64,000 nt of DNA from Heteronotia binoei (GCF_032191835.1 NC_083228.1:8556001-8620000); one strand, 5' to 3'; positions 15,136 to 42,682 are shown, counted from the first letter of the stretch. The notes: generated by a model from the letters alone, not told the origin. Translations and numbers: made by a program.

Positions 15136-15149
15136 TATGTTCAGGTGGC

Positions 15150-16382: not shown

Positions 16383-16982
16383 ATGGCGTCGGGCAGTGGG
16401 ACTAAAAACCTGGACTTCCGCAGGAAGTGGGACAAAGATGAGTATGAAAAGCTTGCGGAGAAACGGCTCACGGAAGAGAGAGAGAAGAAAGATGGCAAGC
16501 CAGTACAGCCTGTCAAGCGAGAGCTTCTTCGGCACCGAGACTACAAGGTGGACCTGGAATCCAAACTGGGGAAAACCATTGTTATCACCAAAACAACTCC
16601 TCAGTCTGAGATGGGCGGGTATTATTGTAATGTCTGTGACTGTGTAGTGAAAGATTCTATCAACTTCTTGGATCATATCAATGGCAAAAAACATCAGAGG
16701 AACCTGGGCATGTCAATGAGAGTCGAGCGCTCGACGCTGGATCAAGTGAAGAAGCGCTTTGAAGTGAACAAGAAGAAAATGGAGGAGAAGCAGAAGGATT
16801 ATGACTTTGAGGAGAGGATGAAAGAGCTCCGAGAAGAGGAGGAAAAGGCCAAAGCCTACAAGAAAGAGAAACAGAGGGAGAAGAAGAGGAGGGCGGAGGA
16901 AGACTTGACGTTTGAGGAGGATGATGAGATGGCGGCCGTGATGGGCTTTTCTGCGTTTGGCTCGACCAAGAAGAGCCACTGA
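16383..16982 (+). CDS. ZMAT2: Intronless ZMAT2 (Snu23 homologue) retrocopy, full length 199 aa
   Basis: [29 protein letters not shown]...[25 protein letters not shown]...GSTKKSH. Zinc ligands intact, no introns, short CpG-rich leader, 3' UTR with AATAAA. Confidence 0.95.
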
Positions 16983-17306
16983 GCGGCCTTGGGACTTTTC
17001 CTCTCGACCGAGCTTGTTTCTGACCAGGTGACACTTGAAAACCCCTGGAAGATTTTGCAGGGAATTTCTACCTAAATGCCCCGAGAGGCAGTGGCATTGG
17101 GAGCTGGGAAGCCAGAGGGGAAAAAACATAGAATTTGAAGAATATAAATGGGAGGAGGCTCACAAGGAAGCTGGAATTAAGCAGAATTCTTTTGCCTTAT
17201 GCAAGAGAAAACAAATTTCTGTAAGCAAAATTGTTTCCATGCACTGGGCTTAAAAAAGTGAATTATCGCTTAACATTATAACTATGTTTTGTAAGCAAAG
17301 ATCATA

Positions 17307-17312
17307 AATAAA
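17307..17312 (+). terminator. Polyadenylation signal of the ZMAT2 copy
   Basis: AATAAA 325 nt after the stop codon. Confidence 0.55.
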
Positions 17313-18054
17313 AGCTTATTTTTTAAACTTTGTTTTCTTTTTTAAAAAATCTTTTATTATACATATAAAACCAAACACGTGTAACATTAATACAAAGTCT
17401 ATTTCCTCTCCAGTTAATAGAATTTTCATCATTTATCTATCAGACATTTAAAATCTAATTAATTAAAAATTATGTGTCAGACAGACAAATAATGCCCCCC
17501 CCCCCCAAGTCTAAGTATTTCTTAGGAACTGAGGAGTTCTGGCACAAATCTGGGCAAAAGAAAGGTCTTAATCCAATTTAATTTTTCTAAAAATGTATTT
17601 GTAATTGTAGTAGCAGTCCATTCCATTGTGTTTTCTTTTTTTAAAAAGTCTGCATAGGATTGCATAATGAATCCCTCAGGCTGCTTTTGAACATAGACGG
17701 AATCAGACGGTTGGATGGGCATCCAGGAGGTCACTGCAGATGCTCCTTTTACATTTAGTAAAAACTTTTAAAAGAATCATACAAATCTTTCATCACATTA
17801 TAAAGAAATAGAACCTTACAAAAAAAAAATCCCAGGCAGTGAGGACCCGGATGTAGGCTTGCCAATGTGAGGTGTAAATCTATAAATTTAGTTAAGGAAT
17901 AGATATTCTCTTTTGATCTTTAAATCATTTATATCTGTTTACATCTAGAGCAGGGGTGTCCAACTTGCAATTTGGGGGCCGAATCAGGCCCTCGGAGGGC
18001 TCCTATCAGGCCTCTGAGCAACTGGCTGTCATCTGCCTCCTTCTCCCTCTCTAC

Positions 18055-18435
18055 GCCAGTTTGGTGTAGTGGTTAAGTGTGCGGACTCTTATCTGGGAGA
18101 ACCGGGTTTGATTCCCCACTCCTCCACTTGCACCTGCTGGCATGGCCTTGGGTCAGCCAGAGCTCTGGCAGAGGTTGTCCTTGAAAGGGCAGCTGCTGGG
18201 AAAGCCCTCTTGGCCCCACCCACCTCACGGGGTGTCTGTTGTTGGGGAGGAAGGGAAAGGAGATTGTGAGCCACTCTGAGACTCTTCAGAGTGGAGGGCG
18301 GGATATAAATCCAATATCTTCACCTATCTCACAGGGTGTCTGTTGTGGGGGGGGGGGGAAGGTAAAGGAGATTGTGAGCCGCTCTGAGACTCTTTGGAGT
18401 GGAGGGTAGGATATAAATCCAATATCTCTTCTTCT
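18055..18435 (+). mobile_element. Squam3-type tRNA-derived SINE with duplicated tail, nested in a MITE-like repeat (~17952-18935)
   Basis: CCAGTTTGGTGTAGTGGTTAAG...GGACTCTTATCTGGGAGAACCGGG head and (TTC)n tail. Other copies at 18965-19245(-), 20860-21135(-), 58270-58510, 61335-61590 and 62190-62370(-). Confidence 0.8.
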
Positions 18436-21239
18436 TCTTGCTTCCTTCTGCATAACAGCTTGCTTTGCAAGGCTTGCTCAATTGCACAGGAGCTACAGAG
18501 CAAAACCTCTATTTTCTCCATTGGCTGAGGCTTCTCCCTTGGGGAGGAGAGGGGGGGAAGAATAGCTTGCTTTGCCAGGCTCTCTCAATTGCAAAGCAGA
18601 GCTACTGAGCCAAGCATCTCTCCCTTCTACTGGCTGAGGCTCCTCTCCCCCCCACAGTCCCCTGGGGAAGGAAGGAAAGAGCCAGAGCTTCCTTTGCCCA
18701 GTTCCCTGGATGCTATGGAAGAAATAAAAAGAAAGCATCTTTAAAACCAATGAGTGCTAATGTTTTAAGCATGTTTTAAGTTTTTTTTAAAAAAAAGTAT
18801 TTGTTTGTGTCCTTTATAAAGTTTATATATCTGTTATCTAATCTTAAATAGCTACACACATGGCCCAGCCCAGCACAGCCTGGCCCAACAAGGTCTCCGG
18901 CCCTCATAACGAATGAGCTTGACACCCCTGATGTAGAGTTTCTGTTTTACAAAGTACAAACCTACTTAAGAAGAAGAAGATATTGGATTTATATCCCGCC
19001 CTCCACTCCGAAGAGTCTCCGAGCGGCTCACAATCTCCTTTACCTTCCTCCCCCACAACAGACACCCTGTGAGGTGGGTGGGGCTAAGAGAGCTCTTACA
19101 GCAGCTGCCCTTTCAAGGACAACCTCTGCCAGGGCTATGGCTAACCCAAGGCCATTCCAGCAGGTGCAAGTGGAGGAGTGGGGAATCAAACCCGGTTCTC
19201 CCAGATAAGAGTCCACACACTTAACCACTACACCAAACTGGCTCTCTTAGGATCTTTTCTTCATTTGTGAAGGGAGGGGGAGAACCTACAGTCGCTCTGC
19301 AAAACCGGATGGGAAAAGAATTCTTAGCCGAAGGACCGAAATCTGTTAAAGACTGGTTCCAGATCACACTGGCTGGTTCCCTTCATCAGATGCAAATTGC
19401 CAGATCTGGCGACTTCCTTTCGTTTATGGGCTGTTTGTGAGGGGGGTGGGGAAGAGAAGGGTGTCCTACTTGGGAATCCAGCTCCTGGCATTTCTACCAG
19501 CATGTTTAGGGCTGCCAAGTCCAATTCAAGAAATATCTGGGGACTTTGGGGGTGGAGCCAGGGGACTTTGGGGGTGGAGCCATAAGCAAAGTTGTGACGA
19601 GCACAACTGAACTCCAAAGGGAGTTCTGGCCATCACATTTAAGGGGACCACATACCTTTTTAATGCCTTCCTTACATTTGAAATAATGAAGGATAGGGGC
19701 ACCTTCTTTCGGGGCTCATAGAATTTGACCCCCTGGTCCAATCCTTTTGAGGAGAGCATTTTGAGGAGGCTCATCAGATGCTACGCTGAAAATTTGGTAC
19801 CTCTACCACAAAAAACTGCCCCTCCAGCACCCCAGATACCCCGGGATTAATTCTCCATTCTACCCTATGGCCCAGCAGACATTTCCCTCCCTCCCCCTGC
19901 CCCCATTTCTGATGACCCTGAAGCTCCCCTGCCCCCACCTGAGGGTTGGCATCTCTACTCATGAGTTGCTGAACTTCCAAGTTTTTCTCAGTACCACAGG
20001 GCAACCAAAGGTTCAAGTTCACCTTCACACTATGCAAAGGAGCTCTGCAAGGATTGTGCAACCAGCAGAGGGTCTGGGCTCCTTTCACAGCCATGTTGTT
20101 CTGCCTTCTCCCCGCCTGCCCTTCAGCCTTAAAGACGCAGACACCCCATCCCAAGAGGAAGGCTTTTTCAAGTAGAGACTGAAGCCTCCGGAGGTGGAAA
20201 GGCACATGGTGGCTGTGGGGGTGGGGCTTCCCCCCTGCCGGCCAGCTGACTGGGGGCGGGAAGGAGCCTGGGAAAGCGGGAGAACCCCCGCTGGGAGCTG
20301 GGGATTGGCAAGCCTAAGCGTGTTACAGGTGAAAAGCAGTGGCTGAGAACTCGCACCCCAGTAATCAGCTGTAAAACACCATCCCTCCTTTGTCCCATTC
20401 AAAATCCCCCCTCCCCTGCTGAGGAATTGAGGGGCATCAAGTGATGACCCCTCCCAGCCAGGGGTGCAGAAAGACACCTGAGGAGAGAGGGGAGGGGCAG
20501 GCAGCGCGGAGTCTGCTGCTATCCAGAGGGATGAAGAAGGGCTGCCATGTTACTCTGTCTGCAGCCGTAGAAAAGTGTAAGAGTCAAGAAGCACCTGAAA
20601 GGCCAACACACTTGGGGGGGGGGGTGGATACAACTGTATACAACTGTATCTGAAGAAGTGAGCAGCGACTCATCAACACTCCCGCCCTGCCACAAATGTT
20701 GTTAGTCTTTAAATTGCTCCTGGACTCCTGGACTCTCACGCTTTTCTACGCGTATCCGGCTGGAAAGTCTCCTAGGAATCCTGTGCAACCTGAGAAAGGA
20801 TTCTGTGTCTGTATCTCAAAAAATATGTATTTGTTGTGGGAAGGCATTTATTTTTTGAAGAAGACTACAGATTTATACCCTGCCCTTCTCTCTGAATCAG
20901 AGTCTCAGAGCGACTTACAATCTCCTTTATCCTCTCCCCCCACAACAGACACCCTGTGAGGAGGGTGGGGGCTGAGAGAGCTCTGACAGAAGCTGCCCTT
21001 TCAAAGACAACTTCTGCGAGAGCGATGGCTGATCCAAGGCCATTCCAGCAGGTGCAAATGGTGGAGTGAGGAATCAAACCCGGTTCTCCCAGATAAGAGT
21101 CCACACACTTAACCACTACACCAAACTGGCTTTTTTGAAAAGAAAAAAAGTCTGACTTTGTAAATTAATCTCAAAAAAGAAGTACACAGAAGTCAGCCTG
21201 GTGAGGACTAAATTTTCTCCAGAAGGGAGACCCTCAGCT

Positions 21240-21770
21240 AAAGGGATGGAGAAAGTAGAGAAAGAAGTCCTTTTCTCCCTTTCTCACAATACAAGAACTC
21301 GTGGGCATTCAATGAAATTGCTGAGCAGTCGAGTTAGAATGGATAAAAGGAAGTACCGGTACTTCTTCACACAAAGGGTGATTAACATGTGGAATTCACT
21401 GCCACAGGAGGTGGTGGCGGCTGCAAGCATAGACAGCTTCTAGAGGGGACTGGATAAAAATATGGCGCAGAGGTCCATCAGTGGCTATTAGCCACAGTAT
21501 ATTATTGGATCTGTCTGGGGCAGTGATGCTCTGTATGCTTGGTGCTTGGGTGGGGGGGCGGGCAAAGTGGAAGGGCTTCTAGACCCACTTGTGAACCTTC
21601 TGATGGCACTTGGGTTTTTGTTTTGTTTTTTGCCACTGTGTGACACAGTGTTGGACTGGATGGGCCTTTGGCCTGATCCAACATGGCTTCTCTTATGTTC
21701 TTACGTGACACAGAGTGTTGGACTGGATGGGCCTTTGGCCTGATCCAGCATGGCTTCTCTTATGTTCTTA
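21240..21770 (+). mobile_element. CR1-clade LINE 3' fragment with duplicated terminus
   Basis: Encodes RTRGHSMKL...RKYFFTQRVINMWNSLPQEVV and ends CTTCTCTTATGTTCTTA. Same family at 62850-63370. Confidence 0.8.
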
Positions 21771-22389
21771 ACTAAGGGGGAAAGAACGGGGAGGGGGGAG
21801 AGGAAAGAACAGCCAGCAAGTTTAAAGAATCTCAAAATTGTCTTCCCTCCCCAGTGATTCTTCACAGGACTCTTGGTTTACAATTTCTCTGCCTCTTAAA
21901 CCAGCCCAGTTTGAGTAAGCTGATTTCTAAGGAGAGCTCAGACAAAAATCCAGATTTTTAAGGGCAGCTGATGCTTTCTGAGAAGTCTGTCAAATCTGTA
22001 GCATAAATATTATCCACCCAACTGGCAAAAGTTCTCTGCTGAAGCTGCCACCATCTCAGACCTAGGCCACGAGAGAATGAGTTACCTCGTCTTCATTTGC
22101 CAAGCATTTCTCCCTCTTCCTCTATCACAGTCTAAGTGAGAGAAACAAACTCCTGGGGCTGAACTCACCTTGCTCCTAAAGGTCACGTCAAGGCAGGCTC
22201 CTCAGCAGGGAGGAATGGTGATGCCTCATAACGAGAGAGAGACCACAATATCATACTGCTAAGGGGGAGGGGTACCTCAGGCCTTCATAAGTAAAGAAAG
22301 TAGGGTGGGGAAAGGAACGATGTGTGTATCTGTTGGTCTTTGCTCAGTTTCAGGGAGGACAGACACAGTGAGAGACAGAAAGTCCTATG

Positions 22390-23625
22390 AATGAAGACAT
22401 GTCTTTCCTCAGGGATGCATCCTGATGGGCTCCTCCAACCAGGAGGGGAAACCTGCCTCATAATGAGGAACTGTGACCTGGATGAAGTCATGGGTCTCCT
22501 CAGGGACACATCCTGATGGGCTCCTCTCAACCAGGAGGGGTGACCCTGCCTCATAATGAGAAACTGTGACATGGATGAAGTCATGGGTCTCCTCAGGGAC
22601 ACATCCTGATGGGCTCCTCCAACCAGGAGGGGTGACCCTGCCTCATAATGAGGAACTGTGACATGGATGAAGTCATGGGTCTTCTCAGGGACACATCCTG
22701 ATGGGCTCCTCTCAAATAGGAGGGGTGACCCTGCCTCATAATGAGGAACTGTGACATGGCTGAAGTCATGGGTCTCCTCAGGGACACATCCTGATGGTCT
22801 CCTCTCAAACAGGAGGGGTGACCCTGCCTCATAATGAGGAACTGTGACCTGGATGAAGTCATGGGTCTCCTCAGGGACACATCCTGATGGGTTCCTCTCA
22901 AACACGAGGGGTGACCCTGCCTCATAATGAGGAACTGTGACCTGGATGAAGTCATGGGTCTCCTCAGGGACACATCCTGATGGGTTCCTCTCAAACAGGA
23001 GGGGTGACCCTGCCTCATAATGAGGAACTGTGACCTGGATGAAGTCATGGGTCTCCTCAGGGACACATCCTGATGGGTTCCTCTCAAACAGGAGGGGTGA
23101 CCCTGCCTCATAATGAGGAACTGTGACATGGATGAAGTCATGGGTCTCCTCAGGGACACATCCTGATGGTCTCCTCTCAAACACGAGGGGTGACCCTGCC
23201 TCATAATGAGAAACTGTGACCTGGATGAAGTCATGGGTCTCCTCAGGGACACATCCTGATGGGTTCCTCTCAAACAGGAGGGGTGACCCTGCCTCATAAT
23301 GAGGAACTGTGACCTGGATGAAGTCATGGGTCTCCTCAGGGACACATCCTGATGGTCTCCTCTCAAACACGAGGGGTGACCCTGCCTCATAATGAGAAAC
23401 TGTGACATGGATGAAGTCATGGGTCTCCTCAGGGACACATCCTGATGGTCTCCTCTCAAACACGAGGGGTGACCCTGCCTCATAATGAGAAACTGTGACC
23501 TGGATGAAGTCATGGTTCTTCTCAGGGACACATCCTGAGGGCTCCTCTCAACCAGGAGGGGTGACCCTGCCTCATAATGAGGAACTGTGACATGGATGAA
23601 GTCATGGTTCTTCTCAGGGACACAT
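22390..23625. repeat. 93-bp tandem repeat, about 13 copies
   Basis: Unit starts recur 93 nt apart (e.g. 22811, 22904). Explains the 31-aa periodic ORFs on the minus strand. Confidence 0.95.
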
Positions 23626-23918
23626 CCCCCGGCTCTTGTGACCTCAGAGGCCTGGTCACAGAGGAGGGCTGGGCTGACGGGGGAGAGGCTGCTGCTGCTA
23701 GGGGAGGCAGGGGGGCTGAAGTCCTGGCCTGTCCCCACAGAACCCATCCCCTGGCCCTTGTGGCCTCAGAGGCCTGGTCACAGAGGAGGGCTGGGCTGAC
23801 TGGGGAGAGGCTGCTCCTCTCTATATATATTTCTCTCTGAAAGGTTACAGCTTTTCTGGCAGGCCGCGTTTTACAGTTAACATCACAAAACATCCCAGTG
23901 TTTTTTCCAAGGTAATTG

Positions 23919-23924
23919 TTTATT
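23919..23924 (-). terminator. AATAAA downstream of the KIN17 copy
   Basis: Plus-strand TTTATT about 330 nt beyond the KIN-frame stop. Confidence 0.45.
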
Positions 23925-24256
23925 GAAATGTTGCAAAAGAAGCCAAAAACAGAATGCAGAAGTAAAACTAGAAAATGCGACAATCAAGGGTATGTAGAAT
24001 TCAAATTATAACTATACAATGGAACCACTTTAATGTTAGCAGTAGTAGGAACCAGAATTTTAAGTACTGAGTACAGTAAGGATAACCCCCCTCCCTCCAG
24101 TTTAAGTGAGCTAGAACAAATACCATTAAATAAACCAATCCTAAAGTTTGTTAAGGGGATCAGACAGAAAGCTTTCATCCAAGACTGCTTTTCTTGCTCG
24201 CTTGCGTCTGCAAACAAATTGTAAAAGTCCAGCTGTGGTACAGTGGCAGTCACAGC

Positions 24257-25156
24257 TCAGGGCGCCTTCAGGCTGAATCTTTTTCTAGAGCCCACCACAA
24301 TTCCACGTTGCAGCCAGTTGTCCGTAGGGGCGGACTTTTTCTTCTCTTCTTCCAGCTCCATGATCTCATCCAGTGCTGTCTTTCTCTTCTTTTCTTTCGA
24401 CTGCCCGGAGTTCAGAGGGATTTCTTTCCGCTTCACCGTCTGTGCTGGTCCTGCCGTCCACAGCCCGCTGCGTCTCAACATACAGGGCTTGGGTGGTGGC
24501 TCTGTGGAAGTTCTCGCTCCTTGGTTCAGACTAAAGACCACTTTCTCTTTGTTGTTTCCTCGCTTTAGTTCTGTGTAGACCGGGACTTCCTGCTCCTTCC
24601 CCTGCAAGCCTCTCCTGATTTGCTCCTGAATGAACCTGGCCCTCTTCTCTTCATCGTCCAAGGCCTGCTTTCTCTTCTTCTCATGTTCCTGCTGCTGGTG
24701 GACCGTCTCCGGGTTCCGGTTGATGTACTGGAGGTACCAGCCTTTGGAGGTTTCGTCCACCTTGCAGTAGCCTTCTCTCCCGAGCCACTTGGTGAAATCG
24801 CTCAGCGTCTCCCACTGGGTGGCGTTCAGGTGGATGTGCTCCCGATAGCTGATGTATTCGTTGTACACAGCATTATTGTGGACTCTCTTGGTTCCAAATA
24901 GTCTCCGGAGGAGTTCCAGGAAATTGTTCTGGAATTGCTCCGAAAAGGAATCCAGGAACCGCTGAGGGTTTTCTGACGCCAGCAGCAGCTGTCTCTGGTG
25001 AGATTCGGACATGCAGTGACACCTGAAGCCGTTCTCATCCCTGCACTGCTTCCGGCACATCTGGCAATACCAGCGCAGCTTCTGCAGCCCCTTCGCTCTG
25101 ATGCGGTTGCCAATCGCCTTGGGGCTCAGGAAATCTGAGCTCTTTCTTCTTCCTCG
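24257..25156 (-). CDS. KIN: Intronless KIN17 retrocopy: no ATG, 3'-truncated, frame open
   Basis: SDFLSPKAIGNRIRAKGLQKLRWYCQMCRKQCRDENGFRCHCMSESHQRQ...TDNWLQRGIVV; homology ends near 24293. Zinc finger and winged helix present, C-terminal SH3-like/KOW region absent. Preceded by a pyrimidine tract and CAG at 25159-25157. Confidence 0.9.
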   Translation of the reverse strand, partial: RGRRKSSDFLSPKAIGNRIRAKGLQKLRWYCQMCRKQCRDENGFRCHCMSESHQRQLLLASENPQRFLDSFSEQFQNNFLELLRRLFGTKRVHNNAVYNEYISYREHIHLNATQWETLSDFTKWLGREGYCKVDETSKGWYLQYINRNPETVHQQQEHEKKRKQALDDEEKRARFIQEQIRRGLQGKEQEVPVYTELKRGNNKEKVVFSLNQGARTSTEPPPKPCMLRRSGLWTAGPAQTVKRKEIPLNSGQSKEKKRKTALDEIMELEEEKKKSAPTDNWLQRGIVVGSRKRFSLKAP

Positions 25157-25360
25157 CTGGGAAGGGGGGGAGGGACAAAGAGGGTGGGGGACTGGGCAGG
25201 CTGTGGGGTGGGGTTGCAGGGCTGTGGGCCAGTCTCCTAGTTCGCCTGGCTTCCCCCTGCCCTCGTGCTGCTCAGGAGGAAGCAGAAGGGGGAAGCACAC
25301 ACCAGGCTTTTTATGTTTTTAACATTAATTCAATTAGTGGTGCCCCCCTGGAAGAATTTC

Positions 25361-25486
25361 CTAGATAAGGCCCGAAGGTGGGGTCAGCTTTCTGGGGGCC
25401 CTCGGCTGGTTCCCGTCCTTGGGGTCTGCTACGGGCTCCTCCTCCTTGAGCCCAGGATGCCCGGCCTTTCGGTTCTGAAACCAGAC
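25361..25486 (-). CDS. DUX-like homeobox gene 1, helix-3 exon (VWFQNRKAGHP...LI*)
   Basis: Acceptor TTCTTTCCTTGCCTCTCTGCAG, then GTC TGG TTT CAG AAC CGA AAG. Phase 0, matching the donor at 27529. Stop after 41 codons. Confidence 0.85.
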   Translation of the reverse strand, partial: VWFQNRKAGHPGLKEEEPVADPKDGNQPRAPRKLTPPSGLI

Positions 25487-27529
25487 CTGCAGAGAGGCAA
25501 GGAAAGAAGCAAAGAGTCACCGTTATCTCTGGACACAAACCTCTCCTGCTTTCCACTTTCCACAAATCACAGAGGAGAATGATACTTGCCCATCCTAGCG
25601 GAATTCATTCCTGCCCCCTTTTCCTGGCTTCCGTGTCACCGGTTATTCCAGAAGGACAAATGTCTCTAGCCTGCCCCAGAGATTTGCAGCATAGCATCCA
25701 GTACCTCTCCCCAAAATACCCCCCCCCCAAGTTTCAAAAAGATTGGACCAGGGGGTCCAATTCTATGAGCCCCAAAAGAAGGTGCCCCTATCCTTCATTA
25801 TTTCCTATGGAGGGAAGGGATTTTAAAGATGTGTGGTCCCTTTAAATGTGATGGCCAGAACCCCCTTTGGAATTCAGTGATGCTTGTCACAGCCTTGCTC
25901 CTGGCTCCGCCCCCAATGTCTCCTGGCTCCACCCCAAAATCTACTGGCTCCGCCCCCAAAGTCCCCAGATATTTCTTGAATTGGACTTGGCAACCCTCCC
26001 CCCATCTGTTCCTTAAGAACCGCCCATGAAAAGCACTTCCTGATGGTCAGCAAGCAACCCTTCAGAAAGGCCCGGGGCTTTTTTGTAGGAGGACCTCCTT
26101 TGCATATTAGGCCACGCCCCCCTGGTGTAGCCAATCCTCCTGGACTTTACAGGGCTCTTAGACCAGGGCCTACTGTAAGCACATCAGAGGGGTGTGGCCT
26201 AATATGCAAAGGAGTTCCTGCTACACAAAAAAATCCCTGGAAAGGCCCATCCCAATATTTCCCAGCTGAGTGGTTGGCCCGGGAGCAGAGGCTGGATCAG
26301 GTAGGGGGCAGGGGGCAGAGGTTTCCAGCATCTGGGGAGGAATTTGTGGCTCTTTCTGGGACTGCCACACATGGGACAGAATGCTAACATTTCTGAAAAA
26401 AAACCCCAAACTTCTTCCCCCTCAGCAGGGAGGACGCCCTTCAACCCAACAGGATCTTCTTAAGGAACAGATGGGGGGAGGGTTGCCAGGTCCAATTCAA
26501 GAAATATCTGGGGACTTTGGGGGCGGAGCCAGGAGCAAGGGTGTGACAAGCATCACTGAACTTCAAGGGAGTTCTGGCCATCACGTTTAAAGGGACCACA
26601 CATCTTTTAAATCCCTTCCCTCCATAGGAAATAATGGATAGGGGCACCTTATTTTGGGGCTCATAGAATTGGACCCCCTGGTCCAATCTTTTTGAAACTT
26701 GGGGGGTATTTTGGGGAGAGGTACTGGATGCTATGCTGCAAATCTGGTGCCTCTACCTCAAAAAGCAACCCCCCCAGAGCCCCAGATACCCGAAGATCAA
26801 TTCTCCATTATTTCCTATGAGAATAAGTCTCCATAGGGAATAATAGAGTCCCCCCCCCATTTTCTCTCTCTCACCCACACACCCGCTTCACTGTCTCTGG
26901 GGCAAGTGGGCAGCCGTGTTGGTCTGAAGCAGTAGAACAAAGCAGGAGTCTCCGGTGCCTCCACAAGGAGGTCTGGAAAGTACAGGGGCTACGCTGCTCT
27001 TTTACACACACACACACACCCACACACACACCCACTCACTTGTCCGAAAGGAAAGCCAAACAAACAGAAGGGCTGCACCCTCAGGAGGTCTGCTGTTGCT
27101 AACCCTTCCCCATAAAGGACTTCCTGCTCCAATTTAAAGGCACACACACATTTTAAAACTGGACCTGTTTGCTGGTCCTGCCCAAGATCTAGAGGTACGG
27201 GGGGGGGGGGGGGGCTGTGGGGGAGGAGCTTCCCCCGCCGGCCAGCTGGCTGGGGGCGGGGGGGGAGCCTGTAAAACTGGGGAATCCCCCGCTGGGACCT
27301 GGAGGTTGGGAAGCCTAGATGGGGGGAAACGCAGGGCGCACACACTCAGACCCAACCTTGTCTCCCTCCAATTGTACAAAAATGCGGGTTCCGTTTCAAG
27401 GATGTAGACACCTCACCACCGCTGCTCAAGTTTGAGAATCTTCCAACCCACTCAGTCATTCTAAAAGCACAACGAATGGACACACACGAAACATAAAAGT
27501 GAGAAAGGGATATTGAGGAAGCAACTTAC

Positions 27530-27705
27530 TTGGACCCAGCTTCCAGGGACTCCTGTTCTCCTTGCCACTTCCTCCCATTTCCTGAAGCTCGGATACAGAA
27601 TATCCTGGAAGGCTTCCTCCAAAATGTCCAACTGTTTCTTCATGAAATTCGTTCTCTTTCTTCTATCTCCGCCTTGGAAAGTAGCATTCCGGTTGAAAGG
27701 AGCGT
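27530..27705 (-). CDS. DUX-like homeobox gene 1, helix-1/2 exon
   Basis: GDRRKRTNFMKKQLDILEEAFQDILYPSFRKWEEVARRTGVPGSWVQ then GTAAGT. This is the classic PRD-class intron between homeodomain residues 46 and 47. Phase-1 acceptor CCCCCTGCAG upstream. Confidence 0.85.
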
Positions 27706-28062
27706 CTGCAGGGGGAAAATGAAGAAGGTGGAGTGCCTCATGAATGCCCAATTCCCACTGTGCTCACTCCGCAATTAATCCAGCCTCCACATTCCATAGG
27801 ACAGGAACATCTAACGGACACACCTCCTAGACTGTCATTCTCCTTTTTTCAATTTGCTCCTCACAACCCCTTGTGAGGGAGGCCAGGGTGAGTATGTGTG
27901 ACTGGCAAAAGATGGCACTGGGAGCTTCAATGGCAGAGCTGGGAAGCTCACGGATTGGGAAGCAAACTGTCTTCCTTGAGAAGGAGATGGATTTTCAAGC
28001 AGGGCATCCAGAAGACCACCAAATTTGGTGAGAGTCAGTTTGGTGTAGTAGTTAAGTGCATG

Positions 28063-29462
28063 CAACTGAGAGTCATCGTTTACTATGCATCACCATACGC
28101 CCTCCCTGCGTGGGTCCAGATTGAAAAGGCAAACTTGCCCAGCCTACTTCTACACGAATTCTTTTGGTCCTCGAGAGCAGACAGAAAGGAGCTTAAAATA
28201 TCAAACCCATTTTTAAAATTTACCCTCCAACTTTGGGATCAATGGAGGAATACTATTACACCGGCTTCATCTCCAGTTATGGCCTTCCTTGGGCAATCTT
28301 GGTTCCCCCCGGGAAAAGACAAAACTCAATTTAGAGTCTGGAGGGAGAACAATATTTTTAAGTTAACTGATATTACTTTGAATGGTAAATTGTGTTCCCA
28401 CTCCCAACTAGAAAGTAAATTTAAGATCACCATCCCATGGTTCCAGTACCTACAAGTACACCATGCATTACATCATATAATACCCATTGTAATGCATAAC
28501 AGGCCACTAAACCCGGTCGAGAAATTAATTAACATAGGTAACTGCACCATAAAAGGAGTTATTTCTATGATTTATATTCTTCTAAACCAAAAAACATGGA
28601 GATGCCCCTCCACTCATCTAAACAATTGGCAGAAAGATTGTGCAATCTCAATTAATGAAGACCAATGGAGCCAGCTTTGGACATCGCCTTTATTTAAATC
28701 CAAATCCCTTTATTTTTGTCTTCAAAATTATAAGTTATTCGCAAGATGGTATATGACTCCTCTTAATCTTTTTAAGGCAAAGGTGAAGGCTGACCCCCGG
28801 TGTTGGAAAGGGTGTGGGCTTTCAGGTTCATTCTTCCACTGCTGGTGGGACTGTCCCAAGGTAACTGATTTCTGGAAATGTATTCTGGAAATAATTTCAA
28901 AAATAATAGGGGTTAATATCCCTTGCACTCCTGCAGTGGTCCTGCTAAATCTATGGCCTGATCAATTGCTGTCCACATTAAAACAGGAATTGGTTACTTT
29001 ACTTTTGCTGGCTGCTAAAATTACTTTGGCATCATACTGGAAACACCCGGATACCCCTCCACTCCAGAAATGGTGCACTAAAGTGTGGGACGTCTTGATC
29101 CAGGACAAGCTAACTACTGCCATATCTATGCTTGATAATATGAAATCAGGAGACTGGTTCTTACAGAAATGGTTTAGCTTCCTTGATTACGTAAATAGTT
29201 CCGACACTATATTTGGGAAACTGCCAGCGAAATATGTGAATTTTATGATTTATTAGTTCTGACCTGATGCAATCTATAGCTTTTTGAAATCCTGATCTAT
29301 ATGTATTTCTTGAGAGATCCTCTCTTCTTTGTTAAAATCTGCTGACAATAACGAATGTGACGGTACATTTAAGGCAATGTCGTAGACCCCATGTTGGGGC
29401 GTGTTGTTGGTTATTGAAATGTTATTTAAACTTCTTTAATAAAAATTTAAATTAAAAAAAAA
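28063..29462 (+). mobile_element. 5'-truncated L1 (ORF2 C-terminus, 3' UTR, polyA) inserted in a Squam3-type SINE
   Basis: ORF open to 29256 with the L1 cysteine motif CWKGCGLSGSFFHCWWDC. AATAAA and polyA tail. TSD AAGTGCATG at 28054-28062 and 29463-29471; SINE halves on both sides. Confidence 0.9.
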
Positions 29463-30144: not shown

Positions 30145-30420
30145 TCTGGAGTGTCGTTGCTTTCACAACGTTTTCACAGCAGATTTTTTACGGGCTGGTT
30201 TGCCATTGCTTTCTCCAGTCATCTACACTTCCCCCCAGCAAGCTGGGCATTTGTTTTACCGACCTTGGAAGGATGGAAGGCTGAGTCAACCTGGAGCCGG
30301 CTACCTGAACCAGCTTCCGCTGGGATCGAACTAAGGTTATGAGCAGAGGGCTCCGACTGCAGTACTGCAGCTTTACCACTCTGCACCATGGGGCTGCTTG
30401 CACAGGGGACTACCTTTACC
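30145..30420 (-). mobile_element. Sauria-type SINE
   Basis: Reverse complement of the 10368-10665 family. Confidence 0.8.
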
Positions 30421-30939: not shown

Positions 30940-32000
30940 CATGACACATTGTCCAAATTTACAAGGCAATCCATACACCAGGGGTGGCCAAACTTGCTTA
31001 ATGTGAGCCAATAGAATGGTCAGGTGTTTGAGAGCCCCAAGACATGAACGCCAGAGGTAGGTAGGTAGCTAGGAAGGAAGGAAGGCAAGCTACTATAAAT
31101 GCATTCTCCAAGCTGACAGATGACCTGGTTTGGAGAAGTGATTTAAAGAGAGAAATGCCTTCGCCAGGCTGGCTGAGCAGGGGGGGGGGGGGCTTCAAGA
31201 GCCACATAAAATGTATTAAAGAGCCACATGTGACCCCCGATCCACAGCTTGACCACCCCTGCCAGGCACTGTTATTCCAGGTTAAGGACATGAGATCAAG
31301 GGGCTTGGGCTCTTTTGATTTTGCATGGGAGGGTAAAGATGTTCCTAATTATTGCAGTCCTGAATGCATTTCTCTGGCAAAACCCCTCCACATTTCCCTG
31401 GGAGGAAAAGGCTTCTTTCTCCTGCGCCACATCAGCCATGAAAAGAAAACTTTTCCCCGATAGTACCTTCGAATCAAGGGGGTTCCTGCAGCCACTTACA
31501 GAAGGACGAACTGGCTTCTTGCACAAAACTTGGAAGTTTATAGCCCTCCTTTTCCCCAGGTAAAGCTTTTAGTCCACAAAAGCTTCTCCTGGGATTCAAG
31601 GGCCAGACTTCAAGGGCTTTGCCTAAGAGCTCCACTTTCCTTCCCCAGGGAATGGAGGAAACAGCCAAGCCAAAAGTTGCTCCCCCAGTGCCTTGACTGT
31701 ACCCTTCATCTTTATCACATGGGAGACAAACTAGGAGGGTGTTTATGGCACCATCCCTGGGGATCATTTGGGCTTCATGCAACAAAGGGGTGACTCAGAG
31801 GCCCCTATCTATCTCCCCATTAGTGCAAATGGGCCTGTAATCTGGAGGGCTCTTTCCTGGGTGGGGCCCCTTGAATCACAATGGAGGTCCTTCCCGCAGT
31901 CTGAGTTAGATGCTCTTTGCCTCGGGCCATTTCACTCTGCAGGGGACACGTTGAAAGGGAGAAAATGTTCCATTCTTGAAAAGATAAAGTTAAAGGCTGC
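30940..32000 (-). promoter_or_regulatory. Duplicated module, copy C, pointing towards homeobox gene 1
   Basis: GTGCAAAT (~31823), TGACTCA (31791-31797), minus-strand TATAAA (31542-31537) and donor GTAAGT (31499-31494). Interrupted by a MITE at about 30980-31262. Confidence 0.55.
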
Positions 32001-32232
32001 AAGGACACCTTGGCATGAGATTTCATTAAATATAGCTGCAATTTGCAATGTTGCTGCCCTATATGTGCTGTACTGTGTAACTTCTCCCCTTACTGGTTTT
32101 AAGTGTCTTCTATTCCCACACTCATCTCCAAAGTTCTAAAAACAGAGAGTGAAGAAGGGGGTAGTCTCTAAGCAAGTGAAAAAAGATGTGCTATATTTTA
32201 AAAACAAAAAAACACCAGATTCCTAGTCTCCT

Positions 32233-32450
32233 ATAAGGCTGGGGAGGGACGGTGGCTCAGTGGCAGAGCATCTGCTTGGGAAGCGGAAGGTCCCAGGTTC
32301 AATCCCTGGCATCTCCAAAAAAGGGTCCAGGCACATAGGTGTGAAAAACCACAGCTTGGGACTCTGGAGAGCCGCTGCCAGTCTGAGTAGACAATACTGA
32401 CTTTGATGGACCAAGGGTCTGATTCAGTATAAGGCAGCTTCATATGTCCA
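32233..32450 (+). mobile_element. tRNA-derived SINE (Squam2-like)
   Basis: A/B-box head GGTGGCTCAGTGGCAGAGC...GGTTCAATCCC followed by a non-tRNA body. Confidence 0.65.
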
Positions 32451-35424: not shown

Positions 35425-35930
35425 TAGGATTAGATCCAAGTGGGCAGCCGTGTTGATCTGAAGCAGTAGAACGAAGCAAGAGTCAAGTAGCACCTTTAAG
35501 ACCAACAAAGTTTTATTCAGGATGTAGGCTTTCGTGTGCTCTAAGCACACTTCATCAGGTGAGGTAGAGTGAGCAGAGCTACATATAGCTGGTAGGGAGG
35601 GGTATAGAATGCAAAATGGTACAAATTTAAGATCCAATGACAGAACAGTAAAATTAACAAATTGAGCAAACCTTTGATCAGGGTAGCATGAGTGCGAGAA
35701 ACAAATAAAACAGTAACATGTCAAAATGTGAGAATGTCTGTTAATCACTCTATTGTTATAAGCCTGGGCCAAAATGAGGGCATTTCTTTCTCAGACATTT
35801 TTCCCATCCAGCTAATTTACCTTTTAGCATGTGACATACATGTAGTTCACCATTAGAAAAAATACATTAAAATATAGTGGAAGATGGGTTTAGTATACGT
35901 AATGATATAAACAGCCAATATCCCTATTTG
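35425..35930. mobile_element. Penelope-like fragment
   Basis: Same terminal motif and internal sequence as 14090-14700. Confidence 0.6.
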
Positions 35931-35939
35931 AGAATTAGA

Positions 35940-38590
35940 GGATTTGAGGATGAGGTTAGCATCCCTTGAGATGGCTCGCCAATGTTCTTCCTGCAGGAAT
36001 TCCCCTGGGGCCACTTTCTTCCCTAGAAAAAACTTAATGTCTCTCCTTGCATGCAAGTCCTAAAAGTTGTGATTGGGTTGAGCTCTTGAATGTGAGCAAT
36101 TTGGTTTTTATTTTTATCTGCGAATGATAGAGACTTGGTGGTATTTGTGATGCAAGTATGCCTGCGTAGAAGGAATCAGAGCGCGGAAGAAGGGGTGCCT
36201 GAGGATTTGATAAATCACAGATTTTCATAGCAGAACAACACCGGTTGAATTTCTGCAGCCGTTTCAAATGCTAGCCCAATGTGGTGGGTTTTCTGGAAGG
36301 TAAAGAAACCCCTCCCCAACTCTTCCAGGGTTGCTGGATGTCTGCAAAGCAGTCTTGAGCTGGTCGCAGTATTGGGGTGGGGGGAGAGCTGCTCTCTGCA
36401 ATTTTGGATACCTGGGATCCACTGAGCAGAGAACAGAACATCTCAGACCTGAGATTCTACTCCCAGGAAGTTCATTCCTTTGACCCCCACTTGGAAGGTT
36501 CCTTGCCCAATGGTCCTTCAGACCAATGCAGATCTTCCCCAGAAAAACTAACAGTGGGTTGTGGATTTTGTGACTTGGTGGGAGGTCCTTTGGCCTCAAG
36601 GGAGAACCCCCAGTTTCAAAAAGGGGAGAAGCCAATGGCAGCCCACCCCTTGTGCAGCTTCACCATCAGCAGGCTAGAGAGAGCACCTGGCACAGTTTCT
36701 ACATCACAAGTAGAGGGGCTGATGTGCACAGCACTCAGACCTGCAACCCAAGGTAGACTTCGGTAAGCTGAGAGTTGAGTTCACTCTTGTTGGTAACACA
36801 AAAGAACATGCGTATTTTGAGAGCAGCAGTTAAGTTTTGGGATTTTGTCATTGACTGATGTGGCTCCCTGTCCTCTTTCTCCCTCGAGAGAAGGGAAGCT
36901 GGAAAAGTTCTGGGTGAGTTCCTCTCTCTGAGGTTTCTTAAAAGTCTCCCCTCCCATCCTAAAGGTGCTAAGGTGGTAGCACCCCTTGGGGGGGGGGTGG
37001 ATAGAGCAGAAGGCTGTGTGCCCTCTGGGATGCATCCCTTGTCATCACCAGCTCCCTACTTCCCCACTCCTAATTCTAAGGTACAAGGAAAGGAGGTAGA
37101 GTTTAAAATTCTTCCCCTTTACATTTGGAATACAAAATGCTGCAAAATCACCTTCATCTTTGGCCCTGCCCTTCCTTGCCTTGACTGAAGATCTCAGCTC
37201 AGGTATTCCAGAAAGACCCATTTCTTTTTTTCCCTTTGGGATGTGTGTGTGTGCGATTATGTCACTCCTCCGGTTGCTAGAGTGGCCTCTCACTTGCCAA
37301 CAGGACTGAAGAAGGAATGCCCTGTCTCTTTAAGAGAGGCAGAAATGGGCAGCTGAAGCTTTTCATGGCCTGGAAGCAGATATTGCCCTCTTATGCCTCT
37401 CTTAAAGGGGCAGGGTGTTTTTTTCCAGGTGGTTGGCAACCCTGCCTTCCACATAGATATCAGAGAAGTCACATGCAAGGTGGAATCCAAACCCAAGGCA
37501 GACCCCCCCCCCCTCTCCTGATGTCAGGCCACTGCTGTCTCTTTCCCATCACCCAGCCCAATACAATCTACAACAGACACAAAATAAGAATATTATGATT
37601 AGATGGAAATACACTGAGATGGATTTTTCCAAATGTTTCTCTTTTTTCCTTACCCACATTCAGGCCTCATTTTGGGCAGGAGCTCACAGGAAAGCAACTG
37701 CGGAACCTCTAAATTTTATTATGCTCTTTCTTACCTACCCCCTCCCCCCAAAAATACTTGCTTCTGGGCTCCATTGTTCAAAACCTGCTGGGAAAATTTT
37801 GCTGAACTCTTAAGATCTGACAAACTTTCTAATATTTTTTCCTACAAGAGATGGGAAAATAAGCAAAACATATCGAGTAGACCAATGAAAATCTTCCTCA
37901 TGCCACTTGGCCACAGAGGAGAAAGTGATTTTTTTTAAGTATGATGGGGGTAAGTTTTTATTATTACAATTATAATTCAAGGAGCATTTTAAGGTTCCAC
38001 GGGTTATGTGGAAGAATGCTGATATAAACCCTCCAGTGGTGTCAGGATGCCTGTGGCTTTATGCACCTGAGTTATGCAAATGAGTGGTACTAATGAGCTC
38101 CGGCACCTCTTTTTCTACAAACAGCCCAGGTTAAAAAGGTGACTGTGTATCAGGTAATAGGCGATGAGACCTCAAGATGATCATTAATGAGGCGGGGCCC
38201 ACCCTTTCCAATAACTCTGAATTCCATTACTGCAAATATGACAGACTTTGTCGGTCTCTATTTCTGAAAGGCAAAACCTGTGGGTCAAGTGTTATTAACT
38301 GATGTGACGTCTTTAGCTTGCATAGAAATTAGCGGATGCTCATCCAAGGCTCTTGGGTCTAGATGAGCCCTTGAGGAGAATAAATTAAGTTTCTACCCAA
38401 TGGGAGATGTCTGCTCTTTCACATGGATTTCTAATCCCCTTCAGTGGACATGCACAGACCACTTTATGCTCCCTCACCACAGTCTGGGCCTGCTGAGATC
38501 CCTGCACTGATTGTGCCCACCTTTCAGTTTGTGCACTGGGCTGATTTCCAAGCGCTACTGGGCCAGGCTGCTCTTTTGCATCATGCAATA
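35940..38590. repeat. Locus-specific duplicated segment E1, possibly a decayed terminal exon
   Basis: About 36370-38590 is collinear with 46840-48560, with shared peptides such as CPFKRGIRGQYL.PGHEKLQLPISAS. Minus-strand acceptor TTTTGTGTCTGTTGTAG near 37570. All frames contain stops. Repeat inserted at about 37660-38130. Confidence 0.6.
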
Positions 38591-39039
38591 ACTGACCCTC
38601 CCCTTTTTTAATTCAGCATGCTGGGAATCAAACCTAGGGTCTTCTGCATACAGAAAGTTTCCTCAGATTCTCATGAAGGCTGTTCTATGTACTGAAGATT
38701 TTTATTCTTAACCTTATTCACTGAATGCTGACGTGGGCTTCCTTGGTTAGGAGTCCCAGAATATCAGCCAGGATGGAGAAGGGGGCGGGGCAGAGCTTCA
38801 GCTGAGAAAGCCACATTCTAAACCCAATGACTGGAGGTGTTTCTGTTTCCAGCATTGGTTTGGGGCTGCTCACACAGAAGCCGCTTCTTGCATACAAACC
38901 TTGCTTAGCAGTACCTGAACCTCATGGTGGGGCATGAGTTTCTGTGAGGCACTGCTCACTTCTTCATCAAAAAGAGAGCCGGCAAAGCACAATAAAAAAG
39001 CAAAAGACCCTCCAGAAAGGGTGGGGTGTGGTGGGTATC

Positions 39040-40016
39040 TTTTTTCCACTCCACAAACATCCTCCAAAAGGATGATGGTTCCTCATCCTCTTGGAGAGGA
39101 GTGACAAGTGGAGTGCTTCAAGGATCTGTCCCAGGGCCTGTTTTGTTCAACATCTTTATCAGTGATTTAGATGAAGGAATAGAGGGAATGCTTATTAAAT
39201 TTGCAGGTGATACTAAATTGGGAGGGGTTGCAAACACAGAAGAGGACAGAAACAGGATACAGGATGACCTTGACAGGCTGGAAAACTGGTCTAAAAGCAG
39301 TTGGTCTAAAACCAATAAAATGAATTTTAACAGGAAGAAATGTAAAGTTCTGCATTTCAGTAGGAAACATGAGTCAATAGTGTGATGCAGTGGCTAAAAA
39401 GGCAAATGCAGTTTTGGGCTGTATAGTGTCCAGATCATGTGAAGTGATGGTATTGCTTTTCTCTGCTCTGGTAAGACCTCGCCAGGAGTATTGTGTTCAG
39501 TTTTGGGCACCACATTTTAAGAAGGACATAGACAAGTTGGAATGGGTCCAGAGGAGGGCAACGAATATGGTGAGGGGTCTGGAGACCAAGTCTTATGAAG
39601 AAAGGTTGAAAGAGCTGGACATGTTTAGCCTGGAAAGGAGGCGGCTGAGAGGTGATATGATCACCATCTTCAAGTACTTGGAAGGCTGTCATAGAGAGGA
39701 TGGTGTGGAATTGTTTTCTGTGGCCCCAGAAGGCAGGACCAGAACCAATGGGCTGAAATTAAATCAAAAGAGTTTGCGGCTGAACATTAGGAAGAACTTC
39801 CTGACTGTTAGAGCGGTTCCTCAGTGGAACAGCCTTTCTCGGGAGGTGGTGGGCTCTCCTTCCTTGGAGGTTTTAAAACAGAGGCTAGATGGCCATCTGA
39901 CAGCAATTAATATCCTGTGAATTTAGGGGAGGTGTTTGTGAGTTTCCTGCACTGTGCAGTGGATTGGACTAGATGACCCTGGAGGTCCCTTCCAACTCTA
40001 TGATTCTATGATCCTA
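39040..40016 (+). mobile_element. CR1 LINE 3' fragment with internal deletion
   Basis: [23 protein letters not shown]...[11 protein letters not shown]1 ORF2 C-terminus and (GATTCTAT)n tail. Confidence 0.9.
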
Positions 40017-40539
40017 TGAAACACCCCTGGGGCTGGTCTTCAAAGGTGGATTAGCCCTATGTGATTAAGTTAGGCGCCCTTGCGGTGGGGCAGGTTAAAG
40101 ACCCACCCTCTGAAAGTCCAGGAAAAGGGAAAGGAACCCTTGGGACAAAGGGAGAGTCTCCTCTATCAAATACAAATCTCTCGCTGTCTTCCAACACTCT
40201 GAATTAGGGCATTTCCTTAAATCAGAACCCTGCATTGGTTTACACTGGTGACACCCACTGACTGTCTGGAAGATGCTGCCAGCGACTTTCTTGTCTTCTG
40301 TGGCACCAATTCCCAGTTCCTACCAACTCTGAAAAAAATAACTCCGGGAGCTGCAGATCTGTGTTGGCAAACAGTTGCAATCCTCCATTTCTTCCCCTCC
40401 TCGCTGCAGCTCCCTAATTTGTACTTGCTGTTGATCTGTGTGGTTCCTGTGACTTCAGGAATGATTTTTCTAGGAAAGGAATGCTCAGGGGAGTATCCAT
40501 ATCCGCCAATATCTTTTGCTAGTGGCTGGCAACCTGGCA

Positions 40540-40800
40540 TTTTATTTATTTATTTATTTATTTATTCATTCCGTAACTTATACCCCGCCCTTCCCACAGA
40601 GTGGCTCAGGGCGGCTCACAGCAAACGATAAAACAATAAAACAAAGTGCAGAATGATTACATTTAAAAAGTCAAAGCATTTAAAAACCTAAAAACCTAAA
40701 ATTCTTAACATTAAAACTATACAATACAATTCACAGAAGTCTAATAAGCTGCATTTATCCAGTCAGGCGTAGGCTAACCGGAAGACGGTTGTCTTCAGCT
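40540..40800 (-). mobile_element. LINE 3'-end fragment (L2/RTE-like), cutting the SLU7 3' UTR
   Basis: (TTTA)n followed by CCCGCCCTTCCCAC...GCTCAGGGCGGCT. Same family at about 60065-60520 and 45270-45420. Confidence 0.55.
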
Positions 40801-40930
40801 GAAACACCTGCAGTAAACTCTTTCAGCTTAAAATTGCTATATATATATATATATACAAGGCAGAAAACGGGCAGAGCTTCGTTCACTTGGTCACCATGCC
40901 CTGTGGGCTTGTGAGTTCTTTTCACAAATA

Positions 40931-42682
40931 CTACTGTCCCAAGAAAGAGGCCATGGGATCATCTGGACGCTGACGCTTCATTTGATAAGCCTCCATTTCT
41001 TCTTCTGTTGGCTCCCGGCTTTCATACATGCTGTTATAAGGTCTCTTTCTTTCATCTAATTGCATGATCTCTTTCACGTGGAGGAGACGGGCTTCTTCTG
41101 CATTTAGTGCCTTTTTCAGTTTTTCCTGTTTTTTTCTCTCTTCTCCCTCACTGTCAGAACTGGTACTTTTCTGATGCCTTTTCTTCTTCTTCTTTTCTTC
41201 TCCCTGTTTTTCTTGATGGATCTCTACAAGAGTTTTGGGAACAGTCCCGTACTCTTCCTCATTTGATTCTCCAGCAGGCAATTCTTCATCAGCATTAACC
41301 ATTTCTTTTCCAGCCTCTCCTGTGCAGTATGAATACTTGACAAATGAGTAGCAGCATTTATATCCCCATTTGTCGTCCTTCCAATACGAACCCCAAATAC
41401 ACGTGTGATTGTTGATCATAACGTCTTCTTCATATTTAGAGCGAGCAACTGCCTTTTCTTGGCCTTTAATAACTGTTCCATGTCTAGAATATTCCACATA
41501 ATCTTCTGTTTGAGCAAGCAGTAATTCATTTGGTGGGGCATCCAGATGTTCTTGCCCTCCATACTTCTCCAGGATGCTCTCTTTCTGCTGCTCCTTGAAG
41601 TCTTCTTTTTTCACTTTGAACGATTTGTACAAAAGTTCGAGTTTTGTAGGATCTGCTTGGAGATGAACCTCAGAGCCTTTTTCATAAGCCTCCCAAGCAA
41701 ATAGCTGTGTTTGTGCCATTGAAATGGTATCCCCAGTGTAACGAACAAAGTTATCACCTGCATAACTGACCTCATCTGGATTCTTTCCTGCATTGGCATA
41801 TGGATTCTCCCTCATTGCTCTTGTCTTGGGATCATAGTATGCTGAATTGGGGTCTAGATCCCGCAAGTATTTGGCAATATCTTCTCGAATGCGCAGATTC
41901 CGGACTGTAATGCGCCGCTTGGAGTCAAAATTCTGCCCAGGCATGTCAATGTCATCTGCGTATTTGTCTTCATCCTCATCTTCGCTGTTATGATCTCGTT
42001 CCATCTGTGAATTTGGTTCCTCTTCGCCCCACCGATGCCTTGGAGAGCTCACCTGCTCTGTCAGTTTTCCGGAAGCCAACTCCTCCTGCAGTTTCTGTGC
42101 TTTCAGTGTGCGCTTAGCTAAATCAACTTTGGCATATTCCTCTACAATCTTCACGTGCTCTTCTGGGTTGTAGCCATTCCAACGGTCTCTTTTTCCATCA
42201 TAATCAAACTTCAGCTGTGGCTGCATGTGCTCATCAGGTGCAATGTTCGTTCCTGTGCATTTTGCTCCAACTTTTCTAGGTCTCTCCAGGCAATCTTTCT
42301 TCTTATGTGTCAACGCACCACAGTTTTCACAGGCTCCTTTGCGGTATTTTGTTGCAACGGAATTCTCTTTCACCCCTCGCTTATACCATTCTCCTTGTGC
42401 AGTCAATTCTTTCTGCTTCTCTGGCTGGGGTCTCTGATGCTTTAGTGTAGGTCTTTTGGAAGGGTCTATATACCATGGCACAGAGGAAATGTACTGAGGA
42501 ATATGAGGATTAATGTCCTTTCCCTCTTCATCCACTTCAGCTGGTGCATTGCCCAGTTTTCTCTGTTCTTCCAACTCTTTCTTCTTTCTCCAGTCCTCCC
42601 TTGTCATTTTTTTAGGCTCTTCTAAACCATTTGACCCTCCAGCAGGGTTAGATGCTATTGCTTCCATATTTACAGATGCCAT
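40931..42682 (-). CDS. SLU7: Intronless SLU7 retrocopy, full length 583 aa
   Basis: [46 protein letters not shown]...[14 protein letters not shown]...[12 protein letters not shown]. No introns or stops. ATG placed at 42682 by homology. Confidence 0.95.

Follow-up and report, generated by a model that had tools for sequence, protein, structure and literature searches.

A cluster of retrocopies of splicing-associated genes was examined in a 64,000-nucleotide stretch of the genome of the gecko Heteronotia binoei (C6:8556001-8620000, that is, C6:8.556-8.620 Mb, in a 2.63-Gb assembly in which contig C6 is chromosome-scale), which is referred to below as the window and whose positions are counted from its first letter. 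The window holds intronless copies of ZMAT2, KIN17 and SLU7 together with the remnant of a WDR70-like copy, and it is best explained as one end of an approximately 0.33-Mb segmentally duplicated array of genes resembling the homeobox gene sDUX, adjoining BMS1 on C6. The analysis partly confirms, at the level of sequence, that this array received splicing-related retrocopies in four separate captures and that some of them have been kept under selection. On balance, we consider it probable that complementary DNA (cDNA) was captured repeatedly at one break-prone, duplicated sDUX locus and that the captured copies were then selectively retained.

Six-frame searches of the genome placed all retrocopies of the four parental genes, which lie on contigs C4, C5, C8 and C14, within C6:8.27-8.60 Mb, and found no other retrocopy of either ZMAT2 or SLU7. 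The KIN17 family consists of five copies on C6 (the window copy and those at C6:8317236, 8369425, 8273071 and 8539260), all within 0.31 Mb, and WDR70 is represented by three intronless copies genome-wide, all of them on C6. The National Center for Biotechnology Information (NCBI) protein set for H. binoei lists the exact SLU7 and ZMAT2 products, three proteins named 'KIN17-like' and one named 'WDR70-like', all encoded on C6. The initial annotation had described the ZMAT2, KIN17 and SLU7 copies as processed, mutually unrelated, tightly clustered and derived from splicing-associated genes, and these points were all borne out: the introns are absent, intron-bearing parents were located on other contigs (C14, C8 and C5, respectively), and each parent has a documented place in splicing, with ZMAT2 assigned to the B and pre-Bact complexes, KIN17 to the latter (PMC13501132), and SLU7 called a typical second-step factor (PMC7845644). 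The zinc finger, by which the three genes had been described, is not the common thread of the captured genes, since the fourth family in the array, absent from that list of three, derives from WDR70, a WD40 protein. Databases list WDR70 as 'not linked to splicing', but its knock-down affects splicing and it has been proposed as a member of the Prp19 complex (PMC7845644).

The four captures differ widely in age. Measured by synonymous divergence per site (dS) from the parent, KIN17 is the oldest (0.50), followed by WDR70 (0.30 to 0.39) and SLU7 (0.042 to 0.063), and ZMAT2 is the youngest.

Tests for selection on the four retrocopy families

The SLU7 parent (C5:166581127-166612565) was rebuilt as 15 coding exons, all with AG...GT borders. 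The copy has lost all 14 coding introns as well as the intron after the 5' untranslated region (UTR) exon, which it carries along, and it retains an intact frame of 583 amino acids with the CCHC knuckle present, as seen in the open reading frame (ORF) listing and in Pfam. In comparison to the parent, 30 codons differ (20 synonymously and 10 nonsynonymously) and one in-frame 6-nt deletion lies in a lysine run; the nonsynonymous divergence per site (dN) is 0.007, which with the dS given above corresponds to a dN/dS of 0.10 to 0.17, and the UTRs are 89% to 97% identical to those of the parent, consistent with the coding dS. For the neutrality test, the parental coding sequence (CDS) was mutated in simulation with kappa from 1 to 6 and a CpG boost from 1 to 10, the parent being taken as fully constrained at replacement sites. 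The results showed that 55% to 65% of the differences in a simulated neutral copy are nonsynonymous, in comparison to the 10 of 30 observed (P = 0.0005 to 0.015), and the pairwise dN/dS expected of a neutral copy, about 0.5, is well above the observed value. These comparisons indicate that the SLU7 copy is not drifting freely and that purifying selection is still acting on it. The dN/dS of the copy's own lineage is estimated to be roughly 0.2 to 0.35, with synonymous changes unpolarised. At the parental locus, 87 bp of the last coding exon are repeated about 0.6 kb past the stop codon (C5:166613179-166613265), with 94% identity.

The WDR70 parent lies on C4, where its many exons span 140 kb. 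Two of its three intronless copies have intact frames of 644 codons and one has stops; over 129 codons compared with the parent, dN/dS was 0.10 to 0.13. The KIN17 parent is a multi-exon locus on C8, of which at least eight exons are joined, and at least seven introns absent, in the copy. For the KIN17-like copies, dN from the parent was 0.105 and dN/dS 0.20. Two of them, at C6:8317236 and 8369425, are 96% identical to the window copy and have their own ATG and frames of 285 codons, which end at the same internal deletion as in the window copy. The survival of 285- and 644-codon frames through a dS of 0.3 to 0.5 points to long past purifying selection on both the KIN17-like and the WDR70-like copies. 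In a protein tree, the KIN17-like clade had a long branch and fell within an unresolved polytomy formed by the KIN17 proteins of gekkonids, so that the event is undatable from the tree.

The window copy of KIN17 has an open frame in which the finger residues are present and the KIN17 zinc finger and winged-helix domain are recognised by Pfam. Its first in-frame ATG lies inside the zinc finger. The match to the sister copies begins only at 25137, with unrelated sequence standing in for the ATG region, and about 100 codons of the C-terminal domain were lost by internal deletion. A 5'-truncated sister fragment at C6:8538797-8539501 retains those C-terminal codons. The window copy is a decaying duplicate. 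The 405-amino-acid 'KIN17-like' model at NCBI starts at the zinc-finger methionine (window 24257-25060) and takes its C-terminus from a fragment about 41 kb away, and it is probably an annotation artefact.

The ZMAT2 parent (C14:15141232-15174259) has six exons, and all five introns are absent from the copy, which encodes an intact protein of 199 amino acids with an unchanged C2H2 finger. The copy is 99% to 100% identical to the six parental exons, the differences being three synonymous and one nonsynonymous (G191A), two among 130 3'UTR sites and one at a 5'UTR site, for a total of 7 in about 774 nt (about 0.9%). With only four coding differences, an open frame is expected from youth alone and is uninformative on selection.

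The initial reading of open frames with zinc ligands thus stands for SLU7 and ZMAT2, which are intact, and for the finger residues of KIN17, but not for the KIN17 frame as a whole, which lacks its ATG and its C-terminal codons. Its suggestion of selection was likewise sustained for SLU7 and for the KIN17-like family, but not for the decaying KIN17 copy of the window, nor for ZMAT2, which has too few differences.

Anatomy of the insertions

The ZMAT2 copy occupies the place of a WDR70-like retrocopy. Its upstream flank is shared with a paralogous locus at C6:8454615 (L033 and L040 denote sequences of this paralogous unit), where an intronless WDR70 gene of 644 codons, and not ZMAT2, comes next. 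The shared flank ends at 16341 within a dispersed repeat, which continues in the paralogue (L040 136-212 matches many dispersed loci). On the other side, parental ZMAT2 homology ends at 17112 inside the 3'UTR without an A-run, while the parental 3'UTR itself continues, and the sequence passes into the end of a WDR70-like copy, whose counterpart (L040 2130-2409) follows the intact 644-codon intronless WDR70 ORF. The two overlap by a 4-nt microhomology, AAGC, at 17109-17112. In total, 771 bp of ZMAT2 cDNA stand in place of 1,963 bp present in the paralogous unit (L040 167-2129), which comprise 47 nt of the repeat and nearly the whole WDR70-like body. A vector-like cassette, with ZMAT2 and WDR70 both beginning at one base of the shared flank, was considered and rejected, as the dispersed repeat spans that point and WDR70 starts about 47 nt further on.

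The SLU7 copy shares the orientation of sDUX-like unit A and sits in its intron, about 0.9 kb past exon 1. The 5' junction of the copy is sharp: 2 nt of filler separate the end of the sDUX match (44120-42827) from the start of the parental 5'UTR exon. The same unit matches L038 220-1554 and L039 243-1559 (C6:8335349 and C6:8281036), both with exon 2 and without SLU7, and exon 2 and the remaining intron of unit A were not found in the window. At the 3' end, parental homology stops near 40164, again without an A-run; matches past this point were rejected as retrocopy sequence, being CR1 copies of 80% to 88% identity. A 252-nt short interspersed element (SINE) at 40540-40791 was inserted into the 3'UTR after retroposition.

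The classical LINE-1 signature of a poly(A) tail and target-site duplication was found for neither the ZMAT2 nor the SLU7 copy, and the KIN17 copy has only an AATAAA signal and a short A-run. Target-site duplications cannot be defined at the ZMAT2 and SLU7 sites because target DNA is missing at both. Insertions of the endonuclease-independent or break-repair LINE-1 type and template-switch insertions are characterised by the lack of a target-site duplication, an absent or 3'-truncated poly(A) end, loss of target DNA and microhomology. ZMAT2 resembles them in its microhomology, missing target DNA and 3' truncation, and SLU7 resembles them in part, through its 5' junction and the missing intron and exon 2 of its host. 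Poly(A) tails are lacking, target DNA has been lost and the ZMAT2 junction shows microhomology, and from this anatomy we infer that both copies entered as cDNA in the course of break repair or by template switching. Unlike usual insertions of this kind, the ZMAT2 cDNA took the exact place of an earlier retrocopy's body, from a related functional class, and kept the 3'UTR of that retrocopy, so that it may have gained a ready-made transcription unit.

The same anatomy bears on the suspicion that cDNA contamination or misassembly put spliced sequences into the contig, to which we assign next to no probability. The copies are 1% to 13% diverged from their parents and recur as diverged paralogues, and contamination is ruled out by the later SINE insertion in the SLU7 3'UTR and by the sharp junctions with duplicated genomic flanks.

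The sDUX-like host array

sDUX has two exons and a single homeobox, which is interrupted by the intron, and is described as multi-copy in a lizard (PMC3004920). The homeobox exons on C6 found their best solved-structure match in homeodomain 2 of DUX4 (E = 8e-24), followed by an unnamed homeobox-domain protein (1e-13) and OTX2 (3e-12); the homeobox is split by an intron between RVQ and VWFQNRRA, and the units recur across the region in both orientations (the window and L038, L039, L049 and L051). As judged from these exons, the array resembles published sDUX in its two exons, intra-homeobox intron, several local copies in both orientations and a paired-class homeodomain nearest DUX4, which supports its assignment to sDUX. 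The published loci are linked to TMEM254 (CJ057) and ANXA11 (PMC3004920), whereas the visible neighbour here is BMS1. Retrocopies of other genes are not reported from published sDUX loci (PMC3004920, PMC10514451), whereas the present array is studded with those of splicing factors. A 93-bp tandem repeat in the window also occurs beside KIN17-like and WDR70-like copies elsewhere on C6 and is therefore part of what was duplicated. No enrichment was seen for TAAYCYAATCA, the binding motif of DUX4 (2 matches in comparison to 4.7 expected).

The position of two retrocopies next to homeobox exons raises the question of chimeric genes, in which sDUX exons would be spliced to retrocopies (exon 1 to SLU7 and unit B to KIN17) and the resulting hybrids of homeodomain fragment and splicing factor would be selected. 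SLU7 lies in the intron in the orientation of a unit whose exon 2 is gone, and its frame is open for 28 codons upstream of the ATG, from a site at which ...TTATTGCAG precedes GAA and whose phase agrees with that of exon 1, which ends in phase 0; the candidate acceptor is, however, unchanged from the parental 5'UTR exon and, being inherited, was not shaped for a fusion role. The window copy of KIN17 is in the same orientation as divergent unit B and about 200 nt downstream of its exon 2, and its ATG was lost exactly where the sister homology ends, with a pyrimidine tract and CAG just before; exon 2 of unit B, however, stops before KIN17, and no homeobox exon lies in the 1.5 kb upstream of the intact KIN17-like copies, which have their own ATG. 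A fusion would also hold only two-thirds of a homeodomain, and we regard such hybrids as improbable.

Table 1. Features located in the window (positions counted from its first letter)
Feature	Position	Strand	Details
Flank of segmental duplication	14793..16341	+	96% identical to sequence upstream of WDR70-like (L033 1-1552, C6:8454615)
ZMAT2 retrocopy	16342..17112	+	15 nt filler; 5'UTR from 16357; CDS 16383-16982; 3'UTR cut at 17112
WDR70-like remnant	17109..17389	+	Last 27 nt of CDS and 3'UTR with AATAAA; 94% identical to L040 2130-2409
93-bp tandem repeat	22387..23627	.	13.4 units, open in two frames
KIN17-like retrocopy, degenerate duplicate	23900..25150	-	Frame 24257-25150; 3'UTR with AATAAA near 23925
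sDUX-like unit B, homeobox exon 2	25376..25516	-	VWFQNRKA...; stop about 200 nt upstream of KIN17 copy
sDUX-like unit B, homeobox exon 1	27455..27670	-	tblastn, 50% identity to type-A exon 1
CR1 long interspersed element (LINE) fragment	39026..40035	+	RVT_1 match; 3' tail about 130 nt from 3' end of SLU7 copy, tail to tail
SLU7 retrocopy	40164..42824	-	5'UTR 42683-42824; CDS 40931-42682; 3'UTR 40164-40930
Truncated sDUX-like unit A	42827..44120	-	Exon 1 (43725-43988) and first part of intron; 93-95% identity to C6 units L038/L039
BMS1-like exon inside ORF	59541..59933	+	Recognised by eye in ORF translation; array edge

Several other features of the region were observed. At C6:8500500-8501400 (L051 6500-7400) there are tandem short units, each coding a 'VWSQNRRARH' peptide similar to homeobox exon 2, and a portion of an sDUX exon appears to have turned into a minisatellite. 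A Ty3/gypsy-type retrotransposon at C6:8472259-8477156 has open gag (479 amino acids) and pol (1,052 amino acids) frames and is thus apparently young. In the window, the ORF of 812 amino acids at 4363-6801 (+) encodes a coiled-coil protein without a Pfam family and has only partial matches to two chimeric H. binoei gene models; it was rejected as a cellular retrocopy, and its appearance is that of a transposon or gag-type ORF specific to the species. Another ORF, of 452 amino acids at 27892-29253 (+), has no Pfam match and has a shorter relative in an inserted block at L040 3706-4098, and it is probably LINE-derived. A run of N (an assembly gap or masked sequence) lies within an ORF at 48900-49050.

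Proposed selective retention, chance and known systems

In the explanation that we favour, the array would have taken in processed cDNAs of four splicing-linked genes at four times, in the order KIN17, WDR70, SLU7 and ZMAT2. The KIN17-like and WDR70-like copies would have been retrogenes under purifying selection that were later amplified with the array and are now partly decaying; the SLU7 cDNA would have entered an sDUX intron in the orientation of that unit, with purifying selection continuing; and a very recent ZMAT2 cDNA would have replaced a WDR70-like body while inheriting its flanks and its 3'UTR with the poly(A) signal. The young insertions may be cDNAs taken up in break repair or by template switching, and the retained copies may be transcribed from the regulatory context of the array, supplying near-normal splicing proteins where the array is expressed.

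The same cluster could also have formed neutrally, if an array that is break-prone or open in the germ line passively captures whatever cDNAs are available, the splicing theme being a coincidence enhanced by a bias towards noticing intact frames and the window's copies having no present function; we consider this possible but rather doubtful. The two young copies do resemble break-repair fillers, ZMAT2 is too young for decay, the window copy of KIN17 is broken, and recent paralogues have a dN/dS of 0.5 to 1.0. However, a neutral SLU7 copy is rejected by its dN/dS, the KIN17-like and WDR70-like frames have outlasted considerable divergence, and all four captures come from a class which is estimated to make up about 1% to 2% of genes; four independent captures from one spliceosome-associated class by chance are unlikely. 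Pfam screens of about 100 kb, covering ORFs of at least 62 amino acids in the window from 1 to 51 kb, of at least 85 in the rest of the window and of at least 80 in 40 kb of the neighbouring array, also showed no further retrocopy of a cellular gene, but only homeodomains, transposon proteins and the known copies. Matches to ADAM17_MPD, CysR_MRC2_N and DpnD_N in the window and a ZMIZ GBD-like match in the neighbouring 40 kb were set aside as likely spurious, lying in tandem-repeat or low-complexity frames.

A number of observations weigh against repeated capture with selective retention. The sequence read covered about 130 kb of the array's 330 kb, and retrocopies without an ORF of at least 62 to 85 amino acids escape the Pfam screens. 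The splicing link of WDR70 is weaker than that of the other three parents (PMC7845644). No orthologous copies were found among the annotated proteins of other geckos, the nearest proteins outside H. binoei being canonical KIN17 (80%) and WDR70 (83%). The recent paralogues have a dN/dS among themselves of 0.6 to 1.0 for the KIN17-like and 0.5 to 1.0 for the WDR70-like copies, indicating that selection was relaxed after amplification and may lie in the past. For SLU7, at least 7 of the 10 replacements occurred on the copy's own lineage, several of them at residues invariant in the SLU7 proteins of seven outgroups, which suggests that constraint is relaxed relative to the parent. In RNA runs bearing the same organism label, 0.45 and 0.38 of the sampled words from the SLU7 stretch were present in comparison to 0.42 expected from the parental mRNA through shared 31-mers, so that no transcript from the copy is needed to explain them. 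For a copy-specific 300 nt (15% of words parental; 24 sampled), the shares were 0.33 and 0.17 under the same label and 0.46 under another organism label, possibly from ancestral alleles in other lineages, and these are at best a hint of transcription of the SLU7 copy.

Functional retrogenes of RNA-processing genes occur in mammals, for example CSTF2T, RBMXL2, PABPC3 and Zrsr1/U2af1-rs1; they are scattered single insertions and are usually explained by X-inactivation of the parent. The present copies are similar in being intronless copies of housekeeping genes, under purifying selection and away from the parent, for which supply in germ cells or the early embryo is proposed, and differ in that four parents on four contigs have their copies in one 0.33-Mb locus. 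Another parallel is the HNRNPC-like retrogene family in the human PRAMEF cluster, in which an RNA-processing retrocopy was amplified by segmental duplication among early-embryo genes. Amplification within the cluster is alike, but that family goes back to one parent gene, in comparison to four parents and four separate captures here.

A further step would be to regard the sDUX array as a renewable nest for stage-specific spliceosome factors, in which intronless copies of transient spliceosome proteins would be recruited again and again and kept by selection, because the regulatory context of the array would express them when the parents fall short, perhaps at zygotic genome activation or in germ cells; we offer this tentatively and think it rather unlikely as it stands. 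The replacement of WDR70 by ZMAT2 within a ready-made transcription unit would then be the latest turnover event. The idea of a supply at zygotic genome activation is circumstantial, resting on the place of the copies inside an sDUX-like array and on the expression of mammalian DUX genes at genome activation (PMC10514451).

Retrogenes are normally scattered one-offs, while the four captures described here share a locus and a functional class over a dS range from 0.5 to less than 0.02. With purifying selection in at least three of the four retrocopy lineages, this would be a rare case of a non-random landing site and a non-random class of genes. The exchange of WDR70 for ZMAT2 shows how a new cDNA can inherit the transcription unit of an existing retrogene, and if expression should prove absent, the locus would still offer a clean case, provided by nature, of cDNA capture at a break-repair hotspot. 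Since the array is related to mammalian DUX, an intron-free supply of splicing machinery under limiting splicing capacity becomes a testable proposition.

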